A stretch of 64,000 nucleotides of DNA from Syncephalis fuscata S228 (lineage: Eukaryota > Fungi > Zoopagomycota). Under the pieces are notes generated by a model. That model did not search any database. It was given only the letters and a program-made list of their open reading frames with translations, and was not told the DNA's origin. The stretch is taken from contig JAHLTZ010000042.1 of the NCBI GenBank assembly GCA_025786725.1, forward strand, positions 62,001-126,000. Reading direction: 5' to 3'. Position numbers and translations under genes: made by a program. Position 1 is the stretch's first letter, and every line of letters begins with the position of its first letter. This document shows, piece by piece, positions 7,795 through 39,899 of this stretch.

Positions 7795-11567
<3,773 letters not shown>

Positions 11568-15629: not shown

Positions 15630-16478
15630 TTTGCTTTGAATAAATACAAATGATTTTAAATATCAATTTATTACATTTATAACAATAAATGTGCTTTAAA
15701 TATATAATTAGCTGATTTATAAAATGCAGTGCAATCAGTAAGTAATTATATCTTTATGTTAGTGGTTTGTATAGTAGATTATTCTACATATGCTATTTGC
15801 ATTTGGCTATTTGAAATTTACGCTTTGTCAAGTATGATTGGTGTAATTATGAAACACAAATATGCATTGTCGTTTCATAGATATATCGTAGCTATTTTTG
15901 GTTGTCATTTGAGCTGGTGATCTATTTGCCCCATTTTTGTAATTCCTTGACTTCGATCTGATTTGTACAGAATTACATTAATATTACAATAACTGAGCTT
16001 TTGTTTTGTTTATATAAAGCAACACGATTTATTGCCAGTTTTAAAAGCAGAGTCAAACTTGATAATTTGGAATGTAATCGCTTTTACAGCAACACAGCCG
16101 CTAGTTGTTGAATTAAGCCGGTACAGAAACTGTGTAGTGTTACAAGTTTATAGATAATATTTATGGCAGAATCATACACAGAATGCCTCTAAATCACACT
16201 TTATAATTGCTTAATATGGAATGTTACATATATTTTTAGATAGCGTTTCAAATGATAGTCAAATCATCCTTTGCAGGAATTATAAACAGGTAATTGTTAC
16301 AGTAATACCGGTTGCATTGAGAACTGTTACATATTACAATTCAATTGCTTGCCCAATATTTTATTTAAATAAAGCAACGTTTTTAATTTGCAAAACAACA
16401 ACTCACTACCAACTACCATTAGGATTATTGATTAATCTATACTTTCGTATCTTTAATATTCATTTAATTGTACCCACA

Positions 16479-19128
16479 ATGCATTCATCACTTTCTAAGC
16501 TACTTTTTGTGCTGGCACTAGCAATCAAATTGAATTTGCCTACTACAAGTAGGTTTTAGAACTCAAATACTATGTTTTATTGTAATTACTAACATGTACC
16601 GAATACTAGATAATTCTGGTAAAAACAATGGCTTAATTTTCGCAAAAGCTACGCCGCTTGATCTTGGCAATTCAATTCAATCCATCGTAGCAACAATTTC
16701 TGATACCGGTAATAAGGCTTTACCTGCCTTGAAGTCAGTAATTCCACTTGAGTCTACCAAGTCAAAGCAAACTGCATCGGCAAGAAACACACCTTCAAAG
16801 TCAGGCCAGATCGATTGGAAATATCCTATTGTACGTCGAGATCAGTCTGTTGTCGAGACCATTCATGGCTATAAGATTGCCGATCCATACCGATGGCTGG
16901 AAGATACTAAAAGCAATGAGACTAAGGTTGGATTTAGTCTAATCAGCTTTTAATAAAACTAACAAATAACTAGGCATTTTCAAGGACCAGAACAAACTGA
17001 CAGACTCTTACTTAAGCCGAAATAGCCAGCGCGATGCTTATACAAGCGCGTAGGTAGCATTAAATGTATTAGCAAAATAGCTATTAATTATCTATTGCAT
17101 TATTAGAGTTACTAAACTATATGGCAGCGACTGGATGAGCACTCCAATGAAAGCTGGCAATTATTACTTTACTTTTTATCAATATAATCTAGATAATCAA
17201 AGTATTTTGTATAAGCAGAAGTCATTGGATGCTGAAAAGACGGTTTTTCTTGATCCAAACCAGTGGGACAAGAATGGTGCTTTTTTTATCAATCAATACT
17301 TATTTTCTGATTCCGGAAAATATTTTGGCTATATTATTAGGAAAAGCGGCAGCGACTGGGGCACCATACGCGTACGTTGTGTTGAAGACAGCCCAAATTG
17401 CAAGGCTGGCCAGGATGCAATTGATGAAGTCAAGTGGACCAAGTTCTTCAACATTGCCTGGTCCCACGATGAGCTCGGCTTCTTTTACACAGTAAGTTAT
17501 AGCTATTATCCACATTGTTTATATTTATTTATTCACAATTGATTAGCGTTATCCAGAACCAAGTGGTAGCGACAAAAATACTGACACCGAGACAAGCAGC
17601 AGTGAAAATGCTAAAGTTTACTACCATCGTCTTGGTACACAACAGTCGAGCGATCAACTAATTGCTGAATATCTGAAACTCCTACTTATGACGTATTCGC
17701 TTCGACAAGCGATGATGGCCGCTGGCTAGTGTAAGAGTTACTGATAATAGTAGTAACGAAAAGGTATGGCTGGCTCGTATGGGTGAAGATGGAAGTGTGC
17801 CCAAAAATATTACATTCAACAAGGTAGTGAATGATATGAATGGCTATTATAATTAGTAGGTGACAATATACATATAGTTAATTTAGCTAAATCAATTTTA
17901 TAGCATTGGCAATGCTGGAGATCGCTTTTATTTTAGTTCTGACAAGAATGCTCCTCGTTTTAAAGTTATTACATATGACATGGCAGCTCCAGAAAAGGGA
18001 TTCATCGATTTGATTCCTCAGCATGGAAAAGACATTTTGAATAATGCATATATTGTAGAAGGTGATTATCTCTTGCTTGAATACATGAAAGATGTAAAAA
18101 GTGCTTTATCGATCCATCAGCTTAGCACTGGCAAAAAAATCCGTGATATACCATTGCCTATTGGCTCAGTGAGCGACATTATAGCATATTCCAAACATAC
18201 CGAAATATTCTTTTCAATGAACTCTTTTTTAAGTCAAGGTACCATTTACCGTTATGACGTTAAATCAGATACACTATCTGTGGTAAATGAATTGAAAACG
18301 CCTGGATTCAATCCCGAGGAATTTGAAACACGCCAGGTATTTGTTAAGAGCAAAGACAGCGTAGAGTTTCCTATGTTCATTACAGCACGCAAAGGAATTT
18401 CACTCGACAAAAGTCACCCAACTATTTTATTTGGTGACGGCAGTTTCTCTTATTCACAAATGCCACAATTCAATACGCTATGGGGTGCTTTCCTCAAACA
18501 TTTTGATGGCATTGTGGCTGTCGCGAATATACGCGGTGGTGGCGAATACGGCACCGAGTGGCATAAAAATGGTATGTTACAAAAGAAGCAAAACACTTTT
18601 GACGACTTCCAAAGTGCCGCCAAATATCTTTCTGAGCAAGGCTACACCAAACCGTCATTGCTAACACTTCAAGGTGACGGTGCTGGCGGCTTACTAGTTA
18701 CCGCCACTGCTAATCAGGCGCCCGAATTGTTCGGATGCGGTCTAGCCAATTATGGTCTTACGGATATGCTACGATTTCACAAGTTTTCCGTTGGAGGTGC
18801 CTGGACAACGGAATTTGGCAATCCTGATGTTAAAAGTGATTTTGAATATTTATTACGGTATTCTCCATTACACAATGTCAATGCCAACAAAACTTATCCA
18901 GCACTACTTTTAAGCACGCCAGATCAATTGGACCGTATATCACCATTAAATTCATACAAGTTAGCTGCTGAACTTCAATATAAACTACCAAAGAATCCCA
19001 ATCCACTGATGCTTCGTATTATTGAAAATTATGAAGTTGATGGAGAATCAACAACGGCTTGGATTACTCAAGTTGTGGATAGGCTTTCATTTATGGCAAT
19101 ATCTCTTAATCTAAAATGGCATGATTAA
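16479..19128 (+). CDS. Secreted prolyl oligopeptidase (S9A) homologue, predicted catalytically inactive
   Basis: Hydrophobic N-terminus MHSSLSKLLFVLALAI. POP motifs YPIVRRD, ADPYRWLED, FLDPN, SGSDW, VYYHRLGT, ANIRGGGEYG, KQNTFDDF and YSPLHN. The nucleophile elbow reads GDGAGG instead of GGSNGG. Confidence 0.88.
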
Positions 19129-20133
19129 GTAATAATCAAATGATTATCAAAATTAATAAACACCGTTTAAATATAGCTGCTTATTATTTGATTAATAAGA
19201 TAAAACTATTACAACGCAGATACGTGTATCATATTAAATTATACTAAATTGTATTGTTTTTTAAATGTTATAGCATTCATTGTTACTATTTCGCATATTC
19301 AATAACTTGGTGTTAAAGCTTAGCTATATCATTACCAATTGGCAATCCAAATTAATCACCAATACTATTATCATATGATTTGCATCGAATTATCAATACG
19401 CATGATTAGCTTGCGAATAAACATCCGGTCCTGCTGATTTCAAGTAACAATTTCAATTGATATTCTTACCAACAACTCAGGCCCTTTGTAAAATAATTGT
19501 TAATTGTTATCAACTATGTAACTTATTGCAAAGATATTATTTACCTTAATAAATAGAATAATACTCATACTAATTGCTAAAAGAAAAGAACAAATTATAA
19601 GTCTAAATTCTTCTTAATTATTTTTAAAGTTCATTTATTATAAAACGAAATTATTATCTACTATATCTACTATAAATCATTCGACTAGTTAACGTTGCTA
19701 GTATGCTTATTATTTTACTTTAAAATAATAGCAGTATGTTATTATATATCTTATTTAGTTTATTAAGTAAATAAAAAATAAATCAACGTATTGTAGTTAG
19801 CTACATTTAATATCGCGACATTGACATTGCTCATTTAACAATAATATCAACTGTGTATTAACTATTTAATGTGCTTTGGAGTCAAATGACTATGTTGATA
19901 ACATTTACGCAGCTGAACTACAAGTTCATTCTATTGAAGATGAAGTTGGGTGGTAAGTTTTATTAATGATCAAATCAATACATTTATTGTCATTCGAGGG
20001 TCAAATGATTACATTTATAAATATCCACACATTTAAACCACACATTATAATACAAATAAAAATCAATTATATTGAATTATAATGACATTGTACTGTTTCT
20101 TTTTGAATGCTACAAAATTACATTAGTATATTA

Positions 20134-23100
20134 AATTATAATAAAGTGAATAAAATTGTGATGAAAATTATAGTAAATAATCAGTTTATTAATATAAATA
20201 TGAATAGAAAGTGTTTTGTATTAATATCCATTCGTTGTTATTTGAACTAACTAAACATTGCTTAAAATGACAAAGTTTGATTTGATGGTAGTAAAAGTAT
20301 ATGCTTTATTAATGGTGCATGATTTTCAAGTCCTGTTTACCATTAATTACTAGTCTGAAGTTTATTAGGCCATCGGCTGTCTGAAACTATATAATTGCTA
20401 TTGGCCTTGATAGCAATTTCTGATAATAAACTATTAACAGCTGTACGACAAATCCATCTAATTTGTTATCAGCTGCTACTGTAATTACGATGTTAGTTGT
20501 AATAAAGGCAGAAATAACAATAGTATATCTTTTTTAATACCATTGCGTTTACTAAAATACATCGGAATTTAAAAGGAAAGTGCAAGTATCGAAAACTTTA
20601 GCCGTGCATTTACATGAAAAAAGTCTTCAATACTTGTACGTTCCAAATCCATCCTCTGCGGCCCTGTAATGCATAGGGTAAAACAGGTTATTTTTAATGC
20701 AAGTAATTAATGCATAGTCTATAACTATTGGTCGTCATACTATTAGTCGCCTTATCTTTGTTGCAGACTTTATTTTTATACAATAAAATACCAATTTAAT
20801 TTAATAAAACCATCAAGTCTAATTGATATAATTAGTTAATGGTATACGGGTGGTTACTATTTAAATAATAATATACAAAATGTATATACGGATATTAAAT
20901 TTGGACAATGCGATTACGCATCACTAAATTAAAGTCATTTTGCAATAGGTGCACGCCATTTGCTTTCCGGTTATTCCGCCTTCCTTGCATTGCTAATAAT
21001 GCTTTTGGTACACTCGTGTTTGTCCAACTCAGGCAAATAGTACCATTTATAAATATATATTTATTGCCATAAAACCATCTGCTATCTATCCGTAATTATC
21101 TTGTTTTCTCTATTTATACTGCTAACTATGAAGTCGTTATATCTTCTACTTATCTCAGCATTGATGGTCAATGCTGCTTCATTGGAGAAACGAGAAACAA
21201 GCGAGGCTGACGCAGCTGTTAATGTCGATGCAAACATCCAGCAGCTAACCAGTCTTACACTTAATAATCGGTAAGCATTTATACTGTTGTAATTTCCACA
21301 CTTACATATTAGAACAGTGTTGTATGGGATCGATTGAATGAAATGACATCAAAGTTTGGCTCACGTCTTACTGGCTCGAAAGGATTGGCGGATGTAAGTG
21401 GCGTGCAAATTGCTTATAGTCAACTAAATGAATACCGATAATTGCTAGTCAACAAAGTGGATTGTGGACCAAATGAAAGCCGATGGCCTTAGCCCAACGC
21501 TCGAGGGAGTCAAGGTCAAGCATTGGACTCGAGGACGTGAATATCTTGTGCATGTCAATGTTGAAGGAGCGCCAAAGGGTCAGCGTGATATTAAGCTGAC
21601 CACACTAGGCAGATCGGCTGCTACCTCACCTAACGGCATTGTAGCTGATATTGTTGTTGTGCGTAACTTCGCTGAGTTGTCTAAGCTGGGCCAGCAAAAT
21701 GTACACGGTAAAATTGTACTTTTTAATGAACCATGGCAAGGCTACGGCGCCACTGTTGCCTATCGTCTGCGAGGAGCCCAAGAAGCGGCCAAATACGGTG
21801 CAGTGGCCGTAATCATTGCCTCAGTTACGCCTGAATCGTCAAGTGATACTCTGCATACCGGATTGACTCTGCCAGCATCGATACCAATTGCAGCTATTAC
21901 ACGAAGTGATGCACGCAATTTTGCTGCTTTGTATAATCGTGCTATAAAAGATCCCGCTAAGTATAAAGTGCCTCGATTGTTTTTTTATACCGAATCGCAT
22001 CTTGATCCCAAAGAGTATGATGGCTACAACATTGTGGTTGACGTAAAAGGCCGTGAATCGCCTGAAAAAATTGTTTTATTGGGTGGACATATTGATTCGT
22101 AAGTAGCAATATGATGGAACATTAAAAATGTTTATTTATTGCATAATCTAGATGGGATATTGGAGTCGGTGCTGTTGATGATGGTGCTGGCGCTTTCACT
22201 AGCTGGGAAGCATTACGGGCTATTGCTCGCTTGCCTCAACGACCTAAGCGTACCGGTAAGTAATAGTCTACTTTTGTTTTATCTACTAATGTTATTTGTA
22301 GTACGACTTGTTTTATGGGTCGACGAAGAGCAAGGAAATGCTGGTGGAAATGGTTATGCGGCTGCTCATGCCAAAGAATTAAAAATCATGTCATGGCACT
22401 TGAGACTGATCTTGGCAACTTTGAACCAGCTGGTATAATATTTTCGGGAAGCAATAATGCAGCTAATATTTTGAAATCAATTGGTGAAAAATATCAAAAG
22501 CCTAAAGTTGGGCAGTTTGCCGGTGATGTCGATGTCGTGTGTAAGTTGATACCTACTTTTACCAATAAACATTGACATGGTTGTATATGAATAATAGCGG
22601 GCGATACAGGTGCCGATATTGCACCGCTTTGCAATGCCGGTGTGCCTTGTGCTGGCTTACTATCGCGCGATCCAATTACCGGAGAGCTCCAGGAATCAAC
22701 TATGGCTACTTTAATGTTCATCACAGGTAGTTATTTAAATTGTTTATTGTTTATCTGTTAATTAACTATATTGACTATAGCCATGGTGATCAGATGTCAT
22801 TTTTGAAACCAGAACAATTGGCCAAAAATGCTGCTGCATTGGCTATTTGGACCTATGCTGTAGCAGAACAAGCTGTTGATCTACCTCGCAGTTAATTGTG
22901 CAATTAACGAATAAACTGAATTATCAATTGCAATTTATTTCAACAACAATAAGCATAGATTAATACTGCTATTCATGAATTTGGCCTAAAAGTGTAGCTC
23001 AATTATTCTTATAAGCAATAACTAATAGATTTTGGCATTAATATTAAATTACAATTAAAGGAAATAATAAGCGATACATGTCATAATATACAATTAAATT

Positions 23101-36675: not shown

Positions 36676-39600
36676 TAAACGTTTATTCTCTTTTATTATG
36701 CACGTATTCATTAATATAAAATACAATAATTTAATTGTATATTATGACATGTATCACTTATTATTTCACTTTAATTGTAATTTAATATTAATGCCAAAAT
36801 CTATTAGTTATTGCTTATGAAGAATAATTGAGCTACACTTTTAGGCCAAATTCATGAATAGCAGTATTAATCTATGCTTATTGTTGTTGAAATAAATTGC
36901 AATTGATAATCCAGTTTATTCGTTAATTGCACAATTAACTGCGAGGTAGATCAACAGCTTGTTCTGCTACAGCATAGGTCCAAATAGCCAATGCAGCAGC
37001 ATTTTTGGCCAATTGTTCTGGTTTCAAAAATGACATCTGATCACCATGGCTATAGTCAATATAGTTAATTAACAGATAAACAATAAACAATTTAAATAAC
37101 TACCTATGATGAACATTAAAGTAGCCATAGTTGATTCCTGGAGCTTCTCCGGTAATTGGATCGCGCGATAGTAAGCCAGCACAAGGCACACCGGCATTGC
37201 AAAGCGGTGCAATATCGGCACCTGTATCGCCCGCTATTAATTCATATACAACCATGTCAATGTTTATTGGTAAAAGTAGGTATCAACTTACACACGACAT
37301 CGACATCACCGGCAAACTGCCCAACTTTAGGCTTTTGATATTTTTCACCAATTGATTTCAAAATATTAGCTGCATTATTGCTTCCTGAAAATATTATACC
37401 AGCTGGTTCAAAGTTGCCAAGATCAGTCTCAAGTGCCATAACATGGTTATTTAATTCTTTGGCATGAGCAGCCGCATAACCATTTCCACCAGCATTTCCT
37501 TGCTCTTCGTCGACCCATAAAACAAGTCGTACTACAAATAACATTAGTAGATAAAACAAAAGTAGACTATTACTTACCGGTACGCTTAGGTCGTTGAGGC
37601 AAGCGAGCAATAGCCCGTAATGCTTCCCAGCTAGTGAAAGCGCCAGCACCATCATCAACAGCACCGACTCCAATATCCCATCTAGATTATGCAATAAATA
37701 AACATTTTTAATGTTCCATCATATTGCTACTTACGAATCAATATGTCCACCCAGTAAAACAATTTTTTCAGGCGATTCACGGCCTTTTACGTCAACCACA
37801 ATGTTGTAGCCATCATACTCTTTGGGATCAAGATGCGATTCGGTATAAAAAAACAATCGAGGCACTTTATACTTAGCGGGATCTTTTATAGCACGATTAT
37901 ACAAAGTTTCAAAATTGCGTGCATCACTTCGTGTAATAGCTGCAATTGGTATCGATGCTGGCAGAGTCAATCCGGTATGCAAAGTATCACTTGACGATTC
38001 AGGCGTAACTGAGGCAATGATTACGGCCACTGCACCGTATTTGGCCGCTTCTTGAGCGCCCATCATACGATAAATAGCAGTGGCACCGTAGCCTTGCCAT
38101 GGTTCGACAAAAAGTACAATTTTACCGCGGATTCTTTGCTGGCCCAGCTTAGACAACTCAGCGAAGTTACGCACAACAACAATATCAGCTACAATGCCGT
38201 TAGGTGAGGTAGCAGCCGATCTGCCTAGTGTGGTCAGCTTAATATCACGCTGACCCTTTGGCGCTCCTTCAACATTGACATGCACAAGATATTCACGTCC
38301 TCGAGTCCAATGCTTGACCTTGACTCCCTCGAGCGTTGGGCTAAGGCCATCGGCTTTCATTTGGTCCACAATCCACTTTGTTGACTAGCAATTATCGGTA
38401 TTCATTTAGTTGACTATAAGCAATTTGCACGCCACTTACATCCGCCAATCCTTTCGAGCCAGTAAGACGTGAGCCAAACTTTGATGTCATTTCATTCAAT
38501 CGATCCCATACAACACTGTTCTAATATGTAAGTGTGGAAATTACAACAGTATAAATGCTTACCGATTATTAAGTGTAAGACTGGTTAGCTGCTGGATGTT
38601 TGCATCGACATTAACAGCTGCGTCAGCCTCGCTTGTTTCTCGTTTCTCCAATGAAGCAGCATTGACCATCAATGCTGAGATAAGTAGAAGATATAACGAC
38701 TTCATAGTTAGCAGTATAAATAGAGAAAACAAGATAATTACGGATAGATAGCAGATGGTTTTATGGCAATAAATATATATTTAAAATGGTACTATTTGCC
38801 TGAGTTGGACAAACACGAGTGTACCAAAAGCATTATTAGCAATGCAAGGAAGGCGGAATAACCGGAAAGCAAATGGCGTGCACCTATTGCAAAATGGCTT
38901 AATCTGGTAGTGCGTAATCGCATTGTCCAAATTTAATATCCGTATATACATTTTGTATATTATTATTCAAATAGTGACCACCCGTATACCATTAACTAAT
39001 TATATCAATTAGACTTATGGTTTTATTAATTAAATTGGTATTTTATTGTATAAAAATAAAGTCTGCACCAAAGATAAGGCGAGCAACGGTATGGATAATC
39101 AGTAGCTATAGCTATGTATAAACTATTTGCATCAAAATAACCTATTTTGTTTTATGCATTATAGGCCGCAGAGGATGGATTTGGAACGTACAAGTATTGA
39201 AGACTTTTTTCATGTAAATGCACGGCTAAAGTTTTCGATACTTGCACTTTCCTTTTAAATTCCTGATTTATTTTTAGTAAACGCAATGGTATTAAAAAAG
39301 ATATAATATTGTTATTTCTGCCTTTATTACAACTAACATCGTAATTACAGTAGCAGCTGATAACAAATTAGATGGATTTGTCGTACAGCTGTTAGTATTT
39401 ATTATCAAAATTGCTATCAAGGCCAATAGCAATTACATAGTTTCAGACAGCCGATGGCCTAATAAACTTCAGACTAGTAATTAATGGTAAACAGGACTTG
39501 AAATCATGCACCACTAATAAAGCATATACTTTTACTACCATCAAATCAAACTTTGTCATTTTAAGCAATGTTTAGTTAGTTCAAATAACAACGAATGGAT

Positions 39601-39693
39601 ATTAATACAAAACACTTTCTATTCATATTTATATTAATAAACTGATTATTTACTATAATTTTCATCACAATTTTATTCACTTTGATTATAATT
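36676..39693 (-). repeat. Right arm of ~3.0-kb inverted repeat
   Basis: Reverse complement of ~20134-23152. Confidence 0.95.
36935..38705 (-). CDS. Secreted M28 metallopeptidase, copy 2 (frame intact)
   Basis: Same exon-intron structure as copy 1, with all Zn-ligand motifs present. Confidence 0.92.
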
Positions 39694-39899
39694 CAACATA
39701 ATAGCTGTATTAATAGGTTGATTAGTAGAGATTATTACACAATTCAAATAATCAAATGGCTAACTCAAATGCCTTTATATAAATCACGATATCATTCAAC
39801 AGTGTAAAATAAAAGAGAAAAGCACAAGAGAATTCGTATGAATATTCTACGATTATTTCTAAACAAGAGAAAAGGAATGTGTAAAGGAATAAGGGTCAA

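Follow-up and report, generated by a model that had tools for sequence, protein, structure and literature searches.

The window analyzed here is a 64,000-nucleotide stretch of contig JAHLTZ010000042.1 (positions 62,001 to 126,000; assembly GCA_025786725.1) from Syncephalis fuscata S228, an obligate mycoparasitic fungus. At window positions 16479-19128, on the forward strand, lies a gene of six exons that is homologous to the S9A prolyl oligopeptidases (POPs) and that has lost the catalytic residues of that family; it is called the dead POP in what follows. The homology searches used each exon translation separately, and exons were brought together solely in the columns of alignments, each break being left as a gap or X. 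The exon translations match the Pfam families PF02897 (Peptidase_S9_N) and PF00326 (Peptidase_S9), and exon 6, at 407 residues, aligns to the solved prolyl endopeptidases in the PDB with an E value of 5e-111. The architecture is the same two-domain arrangement of propeller and hydrolase seen in S9A enzymes such as porcine PREP (1QFS/1H2W) and PDB entry 6JCI. The introns measure 47 to 61 nucleotides and are bounded by GT..AG, and the exon layout is similar to that of the canonical, active POP gene of S. fuscata.

To describe the exons (all +), exon 1 (16479-16548; MHSSLSKLLFVLALAIKLNLPTT) resembles a signal peptide in sequence and hydropathy, with a short n-region, a hydrophobic core of 9 to 10 residues (Kyte-Doolittle 3.4), and then A-L-A. 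Exon 2 (16610-16926) encodes about 70 residues of linker rich in Ser, Thr, Pro, and Lys and then WKYPIVRRD...DPYRWLED, the start of the hydrolase domain (PF02897 positions 1-34). Both the signal-peptide-like first exon and the linker had been proposed in an earlier note on this DNA, and both are present. Exon 3 (16974-17049) contains a one-base gap after 16979, where four paralogues found elsewhere in the genome read GCATTT[G]TCAAGG in the DNA alignment. Exon 4 (17107-17491), which carries the SGSDW motif (PF02897 positions 63-187, E 3e-26), and exon 5 (17547-17855) encode the beta-propeller, and exon 5 is one base short at two points, following 17672 (TAT C[C]T) and 17730 (GTG [G]TA). Exon 6 (17904-19128; PF02897 and PF00326) encodes the end of the propeller and the alpha/beta-hydrolase domain and terminates in the stop codon TAA at 19126-19128. 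The 382-codon open frame previously reported for this last exon corresponds to an ATG open reading frame at 17980-19128, inside the longer exon.

Alignment with the four paralogues therefore shows the frame of the window copy broken three times by a one-base gap, after 16979, 17672, and 17730. Only the last two had been noticed before, at about 17672 and 17732; both exist. Exon 3 is moreover out of phase with exon 2. In exon 5, consecutive homologous pieces are spread over three frames in the window copy, while all four paralogues keep a single continuous frame. Could splicing get around these breaks? An alternative acceptor at 16981/16982 would avoid the first one, but it was rejected, since GCATTTGTCAAG follows the acceptor at 16973/16974 in all four paralogues. 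A very short intron at 17731-17750 would restore the frame in exon 5; it too was rejected, the paralogues and PREP having homologous coding sequence there.

The catalytic apparatus of POPs consists of the triad Ser554-Asp641-His680 (porcine PREP numbering is used throughout), found in the motifs GxSxGG, DDRV, and GHG, together with the oxyanion-hole residues Tyr473 and Asn555. What is left of it in the dead POP? At 18436-18438, Tyr473 is replaced by Asp (GYGGF has become GDGSF), as in all five copies. The nucleophile Ser554 and its neighbor Asn555 are replaced by Gly-Ala at 18679-18684 (Gly at 18679-18681), turning GGSNGG into GDGAGG. Across the five copies, the Ser554 position is occupied by G, D, a gap, G, and G and the Asn555 position by A or T, and the sequence of the nucleophile elbow is G-D-G-A-G-G, G-V-D-T-G-S, or G-D-G-T-G-G, depending on the copy. 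Leu replaces the catalytic Asp641 in every copy (18928-18930 in the window; DHDDRVVP has become DQLDRISP). Arg643 is kept in the window copy (18934-18936) and in three of the five overall. The former His loop, at 19024-19050, reads ENYEVDGES and has no His; the window residue aligned to His680 is Val in one alignment and Gly in another, and this stretch varies the most among copies. The earlier note had stated that the triad and the oxyanion Tyr were all replaced. Alignment to solved prolyl endopeptidases agrees, giving Gly, Leu, no His, and Asp at these positions, and adds the loss of Asn555. None of the three triad residues is found in any copy, Tyr473 and Asn555 are absent from all five, and the S1-pocket residues differ from those of PREP. 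Motifs still present in the window copy include DPYRWLED, SGSDW, ANIRGGGEYG, DMLRFHKF, AW(595)TT, and YSPLHN. With its S9A catalytic features gone, the dead POP is, as judged from its sequence, a non-peptidase homologue built on the S9A POP scaffold.

The losses had been portrayed as four targeted changes in a conserved scaffold, a description that does not survive closer comparison. Conserved sites were defined from 80 active POPs, in which 171 positions show at least 93% invariance. The five copies all keep 113 of these and all alter 31; of the 31, 20 belong to the catalytic domain (positions 471-692) and are located on the active-site loops or close to them (V580L, V644I, I591, H640Q, G679, and G681, among others). 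Loss around the active site is thus far wider than the four residues, and it is in the former catalytic and gating loops that the copies differ most from one another. Among the copies, the most variable stretches are 65-84, 115-134, 195-209, 230-249, 333-347, 378-397, 585-599, 634-648, and 672-695, which take in loops A and B, the gating loops of PREP, as well as the Asp and His loops. Near invariance, despite synonymous changes, marks the hydrolase core (450-474, 495-549, 600-619, and 649-676) and the N-terminal segment. The variable loops may reflect relaxed constraint on catalytic loops that have become useless, or they may form a diversified binding surface. The data fit either possibility, and the breadth of the loss is likewise as compatible with relaxed constraint as with new binding.

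How widespread is this dead gene? A six-frame search of the genome found four further copies, on contigs C257, C290, C312, and C350, whose exon 6 proteins are 67 to 93% identical to that of the window copy. Exon 1 and its ATG are kept in all five. Apart from the five dead copies, the search found a single canonical active gene, P0123, which occurs twice, at nearly identical sites on contigs C24 and C175. In phylogeny, the dead copies form one clade (support 100/100) on a stem of length 0.52. Because all five lack the same residues and belong to a single clade, catalysis was lost before the family expanded, and the common ancestor of the five already lacked Ser, Asp, His, Tyr473, and Asn555. 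The closest outside sequences, which keep every catalytic residue, are the canonical POPs of Syncephalis plumigaleata and Thamnocephalis, the S. plumigaleata protein P0006, and the Thamnocephalis protein P0125. The dead clade is placed as sister to P0006 with weak support (77/87). Grouping it instead with the canonical S. fuscata gene gives a p-AU of 0.052, so descent from that gene is a borderline possibility that the test does not reject. None of the 228 other homologues fetched lacks all three triad motifs, and neither the 233 fetched homologues nor full-text searches of the literature yielded a secreted, multicopy S9A family that has lost its whole catalytic set and yet is under selection.

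Has this family, once deprived of catalysis, simply decayed? For the selection tests, the coding columns of the five copies were aligned with every frame break left as a gap. Treated in this way, the original frame is free of stop codons in all five, a lone stop symbol in C257 being an alignment artifact between two nearby one-base gaps. Some 490 substitutions counted by parsimony include no nonsense changes, whereas 19.5 (4%) would be expected from the observed mutation spectrum (P of about 3e-9). Overall omega under the GY+F3X4 codon model is 0.64, significantly below 1 (2dlnL of 19.0, p of about 1e-5). For domains set in advance, it is 0.56 in the hydrolase domain (p 3.5e-4), 0.62 in the propeller (p 1e-3), and 1.39, not significantly different from 1, in the signal peptide plus linker. 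A core partition has an omega of 0.36, a value to be read with the fact that this partition was picked post hoc from the window plot. Constraint is no weaker on terminal branches than on internal branches: the ratio of nonsynonymous to synonymous changes is 1.58 on terminal branches and 1.73 on internal ones, against a neutral expectation of 2.38, and purifying selection on the terminal branches is supported at p 0.003. As for positive selection, the windows with omega above 1 (signal peptide plus linker, and His loop) are not significant.

Larger changes have also respected the reading frame. The only multibase exonic indels are of 6 bp and 45 bp, both in frame. Intron 1 has two alternative in-frame acceptors, of which every copy carries one and only one. 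The window copy and C257 use the AG at 16608-16609 (TACTAG|AT). C290, C312, and C350 have lost this site and have an in-frame GCAG|AA, absent from the other two, 33 nt downstream, which removes 11 residues of the linker. The marks of a processed or decayed pseudogene are thus missing from the five copies: there are no nonsense changes, omega is significantly below 1, no frameshift is common to copies, and the introns are kept. Taken together, the absence of nonsense changes, the omega of 0.64, the in-frame older indels, and the kept acceptors exclude a plain old pseudogene for most of the family's history and support a retained, noncatalytic function of the kind the earlier note had proposed. 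After the loss, the five copies kept evolving as protein-coding genes with an open frame, usable splice sites, and weak to moderate purifying selection on both domains. RIP-like repeat mutation was also considered as a process acting on the copies and was rejected: private transitions number 97 GC>AT versus 89 AT>GC, with no dinucleotide preference.

If the genes have been selected, why does the assembly show them broken? The five copies carry 22 private one-base deletions and no insertions, and not even sister copies have one in common. Substitutions and gaps on the terminal branches number 3 and 3 for the window copy, 7 and 9 to 10 for C257, 52 and 1 to 2 for C290, 41 and 6 for C312, and 106 and 8 for C350. 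Gap number therefore does not track branch length, and on the youngest branches (the window copy and C257) gaps equal or exceed substitutions, compared with about 0.15 indels per substitution in the older noncoding divergence of the same copies. Similar gaps are found elsewhere. The gene for alanyl-tRNA synthetase (AlaRS) at window positions 7795-11567 has a -1 frame jump at 8576-8579, inside the universal GPCGPC motif and just after NFWSMGDEG, with no intron there; a one-base gap here, in a gene that is essential and single-copy, suggests that the assembly consensus contains errors. Two 3-kb stretches, at 14500-17500 of contig C6 and 40341-43341 of contig C246, differ by no substitutions and by two internal one-base indels. 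In the metallopeptidase gene neighboring the dead POP (described below), copy A differs from copy B (36676-39703, reverse strand) by two exonic one-base gaps, at 22383 and 22684, and over their length these twins have 19 indels, all of a single base, alongside 66 substitutions. The private one-base deletions, their mismatch with branch length, the AlaRS and metallopeptidase gaps, and the C6/C246 indels together make assembly error likelier than decay. It is quite probable that the frame breaks of the window copy are one-base consensus errors, and that copy itself is probably intact. As one-base gaps of this sort break essential genes, frameshifts in the S. fuscata assembly should not be taken as evidence of pseudogenes. 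The assembly also contains redundant or recently duplicated stretches, namely, C6/C246, C175/C24, and C355/C361; in the last pair there are 36 substitutions and two internal indels, one of 3 bases and one of 9, each length divisible by three.

The dead POP gene is part of a larger repeat. A unit of about 4 kb (16006-20027), comprising the promoter, the gene with its introns, and the 3' flank, is common to the four other loci, with blastn matches of 85 to 98% identity over 3.4 to 4.1 kb on C257, C290, C312, and C350. The C257 copy was considered as a haplotig of the window locus, an idea rejected on finding that homology stops at the end of the repeat unit. Next to the unit on its left lies a segment of 368 bases (15638-16005) whose orientation is opposite to that at the other four loci. 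There it matches the reverse strand, likewise immediately left of the unit, and an inverted copy of window 16006-16202 brackets it. The right end of the unit (about 19700-20027) is a dispersed repeat of about 300 bp with 1194 first-look candidates in the genome; the 40 that were scored are 78 to 88% identical, and the repeat often occurs as inverted pairs 5 to 14 kb apart. The C290 copy is flanked by one such inverted pair, 99% identical with arms of 298 bp (C290 168749-169046 and 174873-175170). Capture by a terminal inverted repeat (TIR) transposon is not established by this arrangement: the arms are an abundant dispersed repeat, no target-site duplication was found, and three other inverted pairs contain no transposase domain. 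Beyond the unit lies an M28 metallopeptidase gene with a PA domain, whose copy A starts at about 21134; the dead POP gene ends at 19128. The M28 repeat itself starts at 20124, after the POP unit has ended at about 20027, and no M28 homologue occurs within the 16 to 30 kb examined around the copies on C257, C290, C312, and C350.

What, then, is the dead POP? Homology to an enzyme family, loss of its essential catalytic residues, and selection that continued afterward are the hallmarks of pseudoenzymes, and by the comparisons above the family has all three; its function probably includes binding. The protein would be exported by means of the signal peptide of exon 1, would bear a flexible linker, and would keep the closed two-domain POP fold. 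It would bind without cleaving, with the former gating and active-site loops (A, B, Asp, and His) being the regions that differ most between copies, and the three frame breaks of the window copy are most likely errors of the assembly consensus rather than mutations. We put the probability of this joint reading, that the locus belongs to a five-copy, S. fuscata-specific family of secreted-type S9A pseudoenzymes with a binding role and that the breaks are assembly errors, at roughly 0.6. Several observations weigh against it. Gap density in the family, at about 1 per 460 coding bases, exceeds that of the control sequences, among them the near-identical canonical POP pair, with 0 in its approximately 4.2 kb of exons. 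Sites that vary between copies hold 9 of the 22 gaps, against 16% expected, an excess that calls either for an error mode specific to repeats or for genuine mutation of some kind. An omega of about 0.6 is weak constraint, and the terminal branch of C312, which carries 6 gaps, looks neutral (12 synonymous to 29 nonsynonymous changes), so C312 at least may really be decaying.

Such points feed the somewhat unlikely alternative that the whole family was recently released from selection, the one-base deletions being real and all five copies decaying pseudogenes. Every copy in the assembly does have frame-breaking gaps, and their numbers (3, 9 to 10, 1 to 2, 6, and 8) fit a single Poisson rate, as simultaneous release would give. 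The recently duplicated active POP pair has its indels outside exons only, and the neutral-looking ratio on C312 fits as well. Yet recent decay would require 12 to 13 deletions against 10 substitutions on the window and C257 branches, far from the older noncoding rate, and it would have to proceed without insertions or nonsense substitutions and with hardly any indel of more than 1 base, while terminal branches remain under purifying selection. It would also leave aside the like gap in AlaRS and the one-base indels that are the sole internal differences between C6 and C246. An extremely improbable alternative is that the protein is still a hydrolase through other residues or has acquired an enzymatic activity of a new kind on this scaffold. 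The fold is conserved, as are Trp595, much of the hydrolase core, and, in three copies, Arg643, but no replacement nucleophile, acid, or base is conserved at or near the old sites, the elbow differs by copy, and nowhere does the protein vary more than in the former catalytic loops. The earlier note had also suggested an enzyme-plus-decoy module made up of the dead POP and the duplicated peptidase beside it, to which an enzyme-plus-inhibitor version may be added. Physical adjacency, seen in this window only, and the signal-peptide-like starts of both genes are in its favor, but the idea is very unlikely: the neighbor is not an S9 peptidase but an M28 metallopeptidase, of different clan and mechanism, it has no homologue in the regions examined at the other four copies, and the POP unit stops short of the M28 repeat. 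The adjacency looks accidental.

If the dead POP is indeed a secreted binding protein, what might it bind? In an obligate mycoparasite, the family is a candidate host-directed binding protein. A tentative extension, which we regard as unlikely as it stands, is that its members are diversifying, effector-like binders with loops A, B, Asp, and His as variable surfaces, trapping host peptides or binding host proteins (proteases or proline-rich wall or signaling peptides), and spread as a 4-kb unit bordered by the abundant 300-bp inverted repeat. Noncatalytic relatives are already known in the wider S9 family. DPP6 and DPP10, the nearest parallel, are S9B non-peptidase homologues that lost the nucleophile Ser and are kept for a binding role as subunits of Kv4 channels. 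The likeness to the dead POP, an S9 propeller-plus-hydrolase shell without its nucleophile, holds at the family level. DPP6 and DPP10 are animal type II membrane proteins of S9B that lose only part of the catalytic set, not a secreted, multicopy fungal family. The dead POPs are also a natural experiment on what a propeller-plus-hydrolase shell is capable of once its chemistry is gone.

In place of the cytosolic or mitochondrial start of PREP, the five copies begin with the signal-peptide-like exon, followed by the linker of about 70 residues. The signal peptide had been described as gained by the dead protein. Its signal-peptide-like exon stands, and the dead family itself may or may not have gained it, as P0125 of Thamnocephalis sphaerospora also has a signal-peptide-like start and is of the active type, keeping GxSNGG, DDRVVP, GHG, and GYGGF. 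P0006 of S. plumigaleata keeps the same four motifs and has C-terminal motifs in common with the dead family (SYKLAAELQYKLP.NPNPLML). P0125 and P0006 are POP paralogues of the Zoopagales distinct from the canonical gene. The P0006 locus (L024:7333-7442; GCA_025201365.1) has a frame jump between WKYPTVFRNES and NLHGYQIADPYRW, which the deposited gene model bridges by means of an unlikely upstream exon; the N terminus of P0006 is therefore uncertain. In the canonical S. fuscata protein, P0123, an internal Met (MTVTTWTYP) is preceded by an N-terminal extension of about 57 residues that resembles a presequence and is rich in Arg, Ser, and Leu, which suggests that this gene may give rise to both mitochondrial and cytosolic forms.

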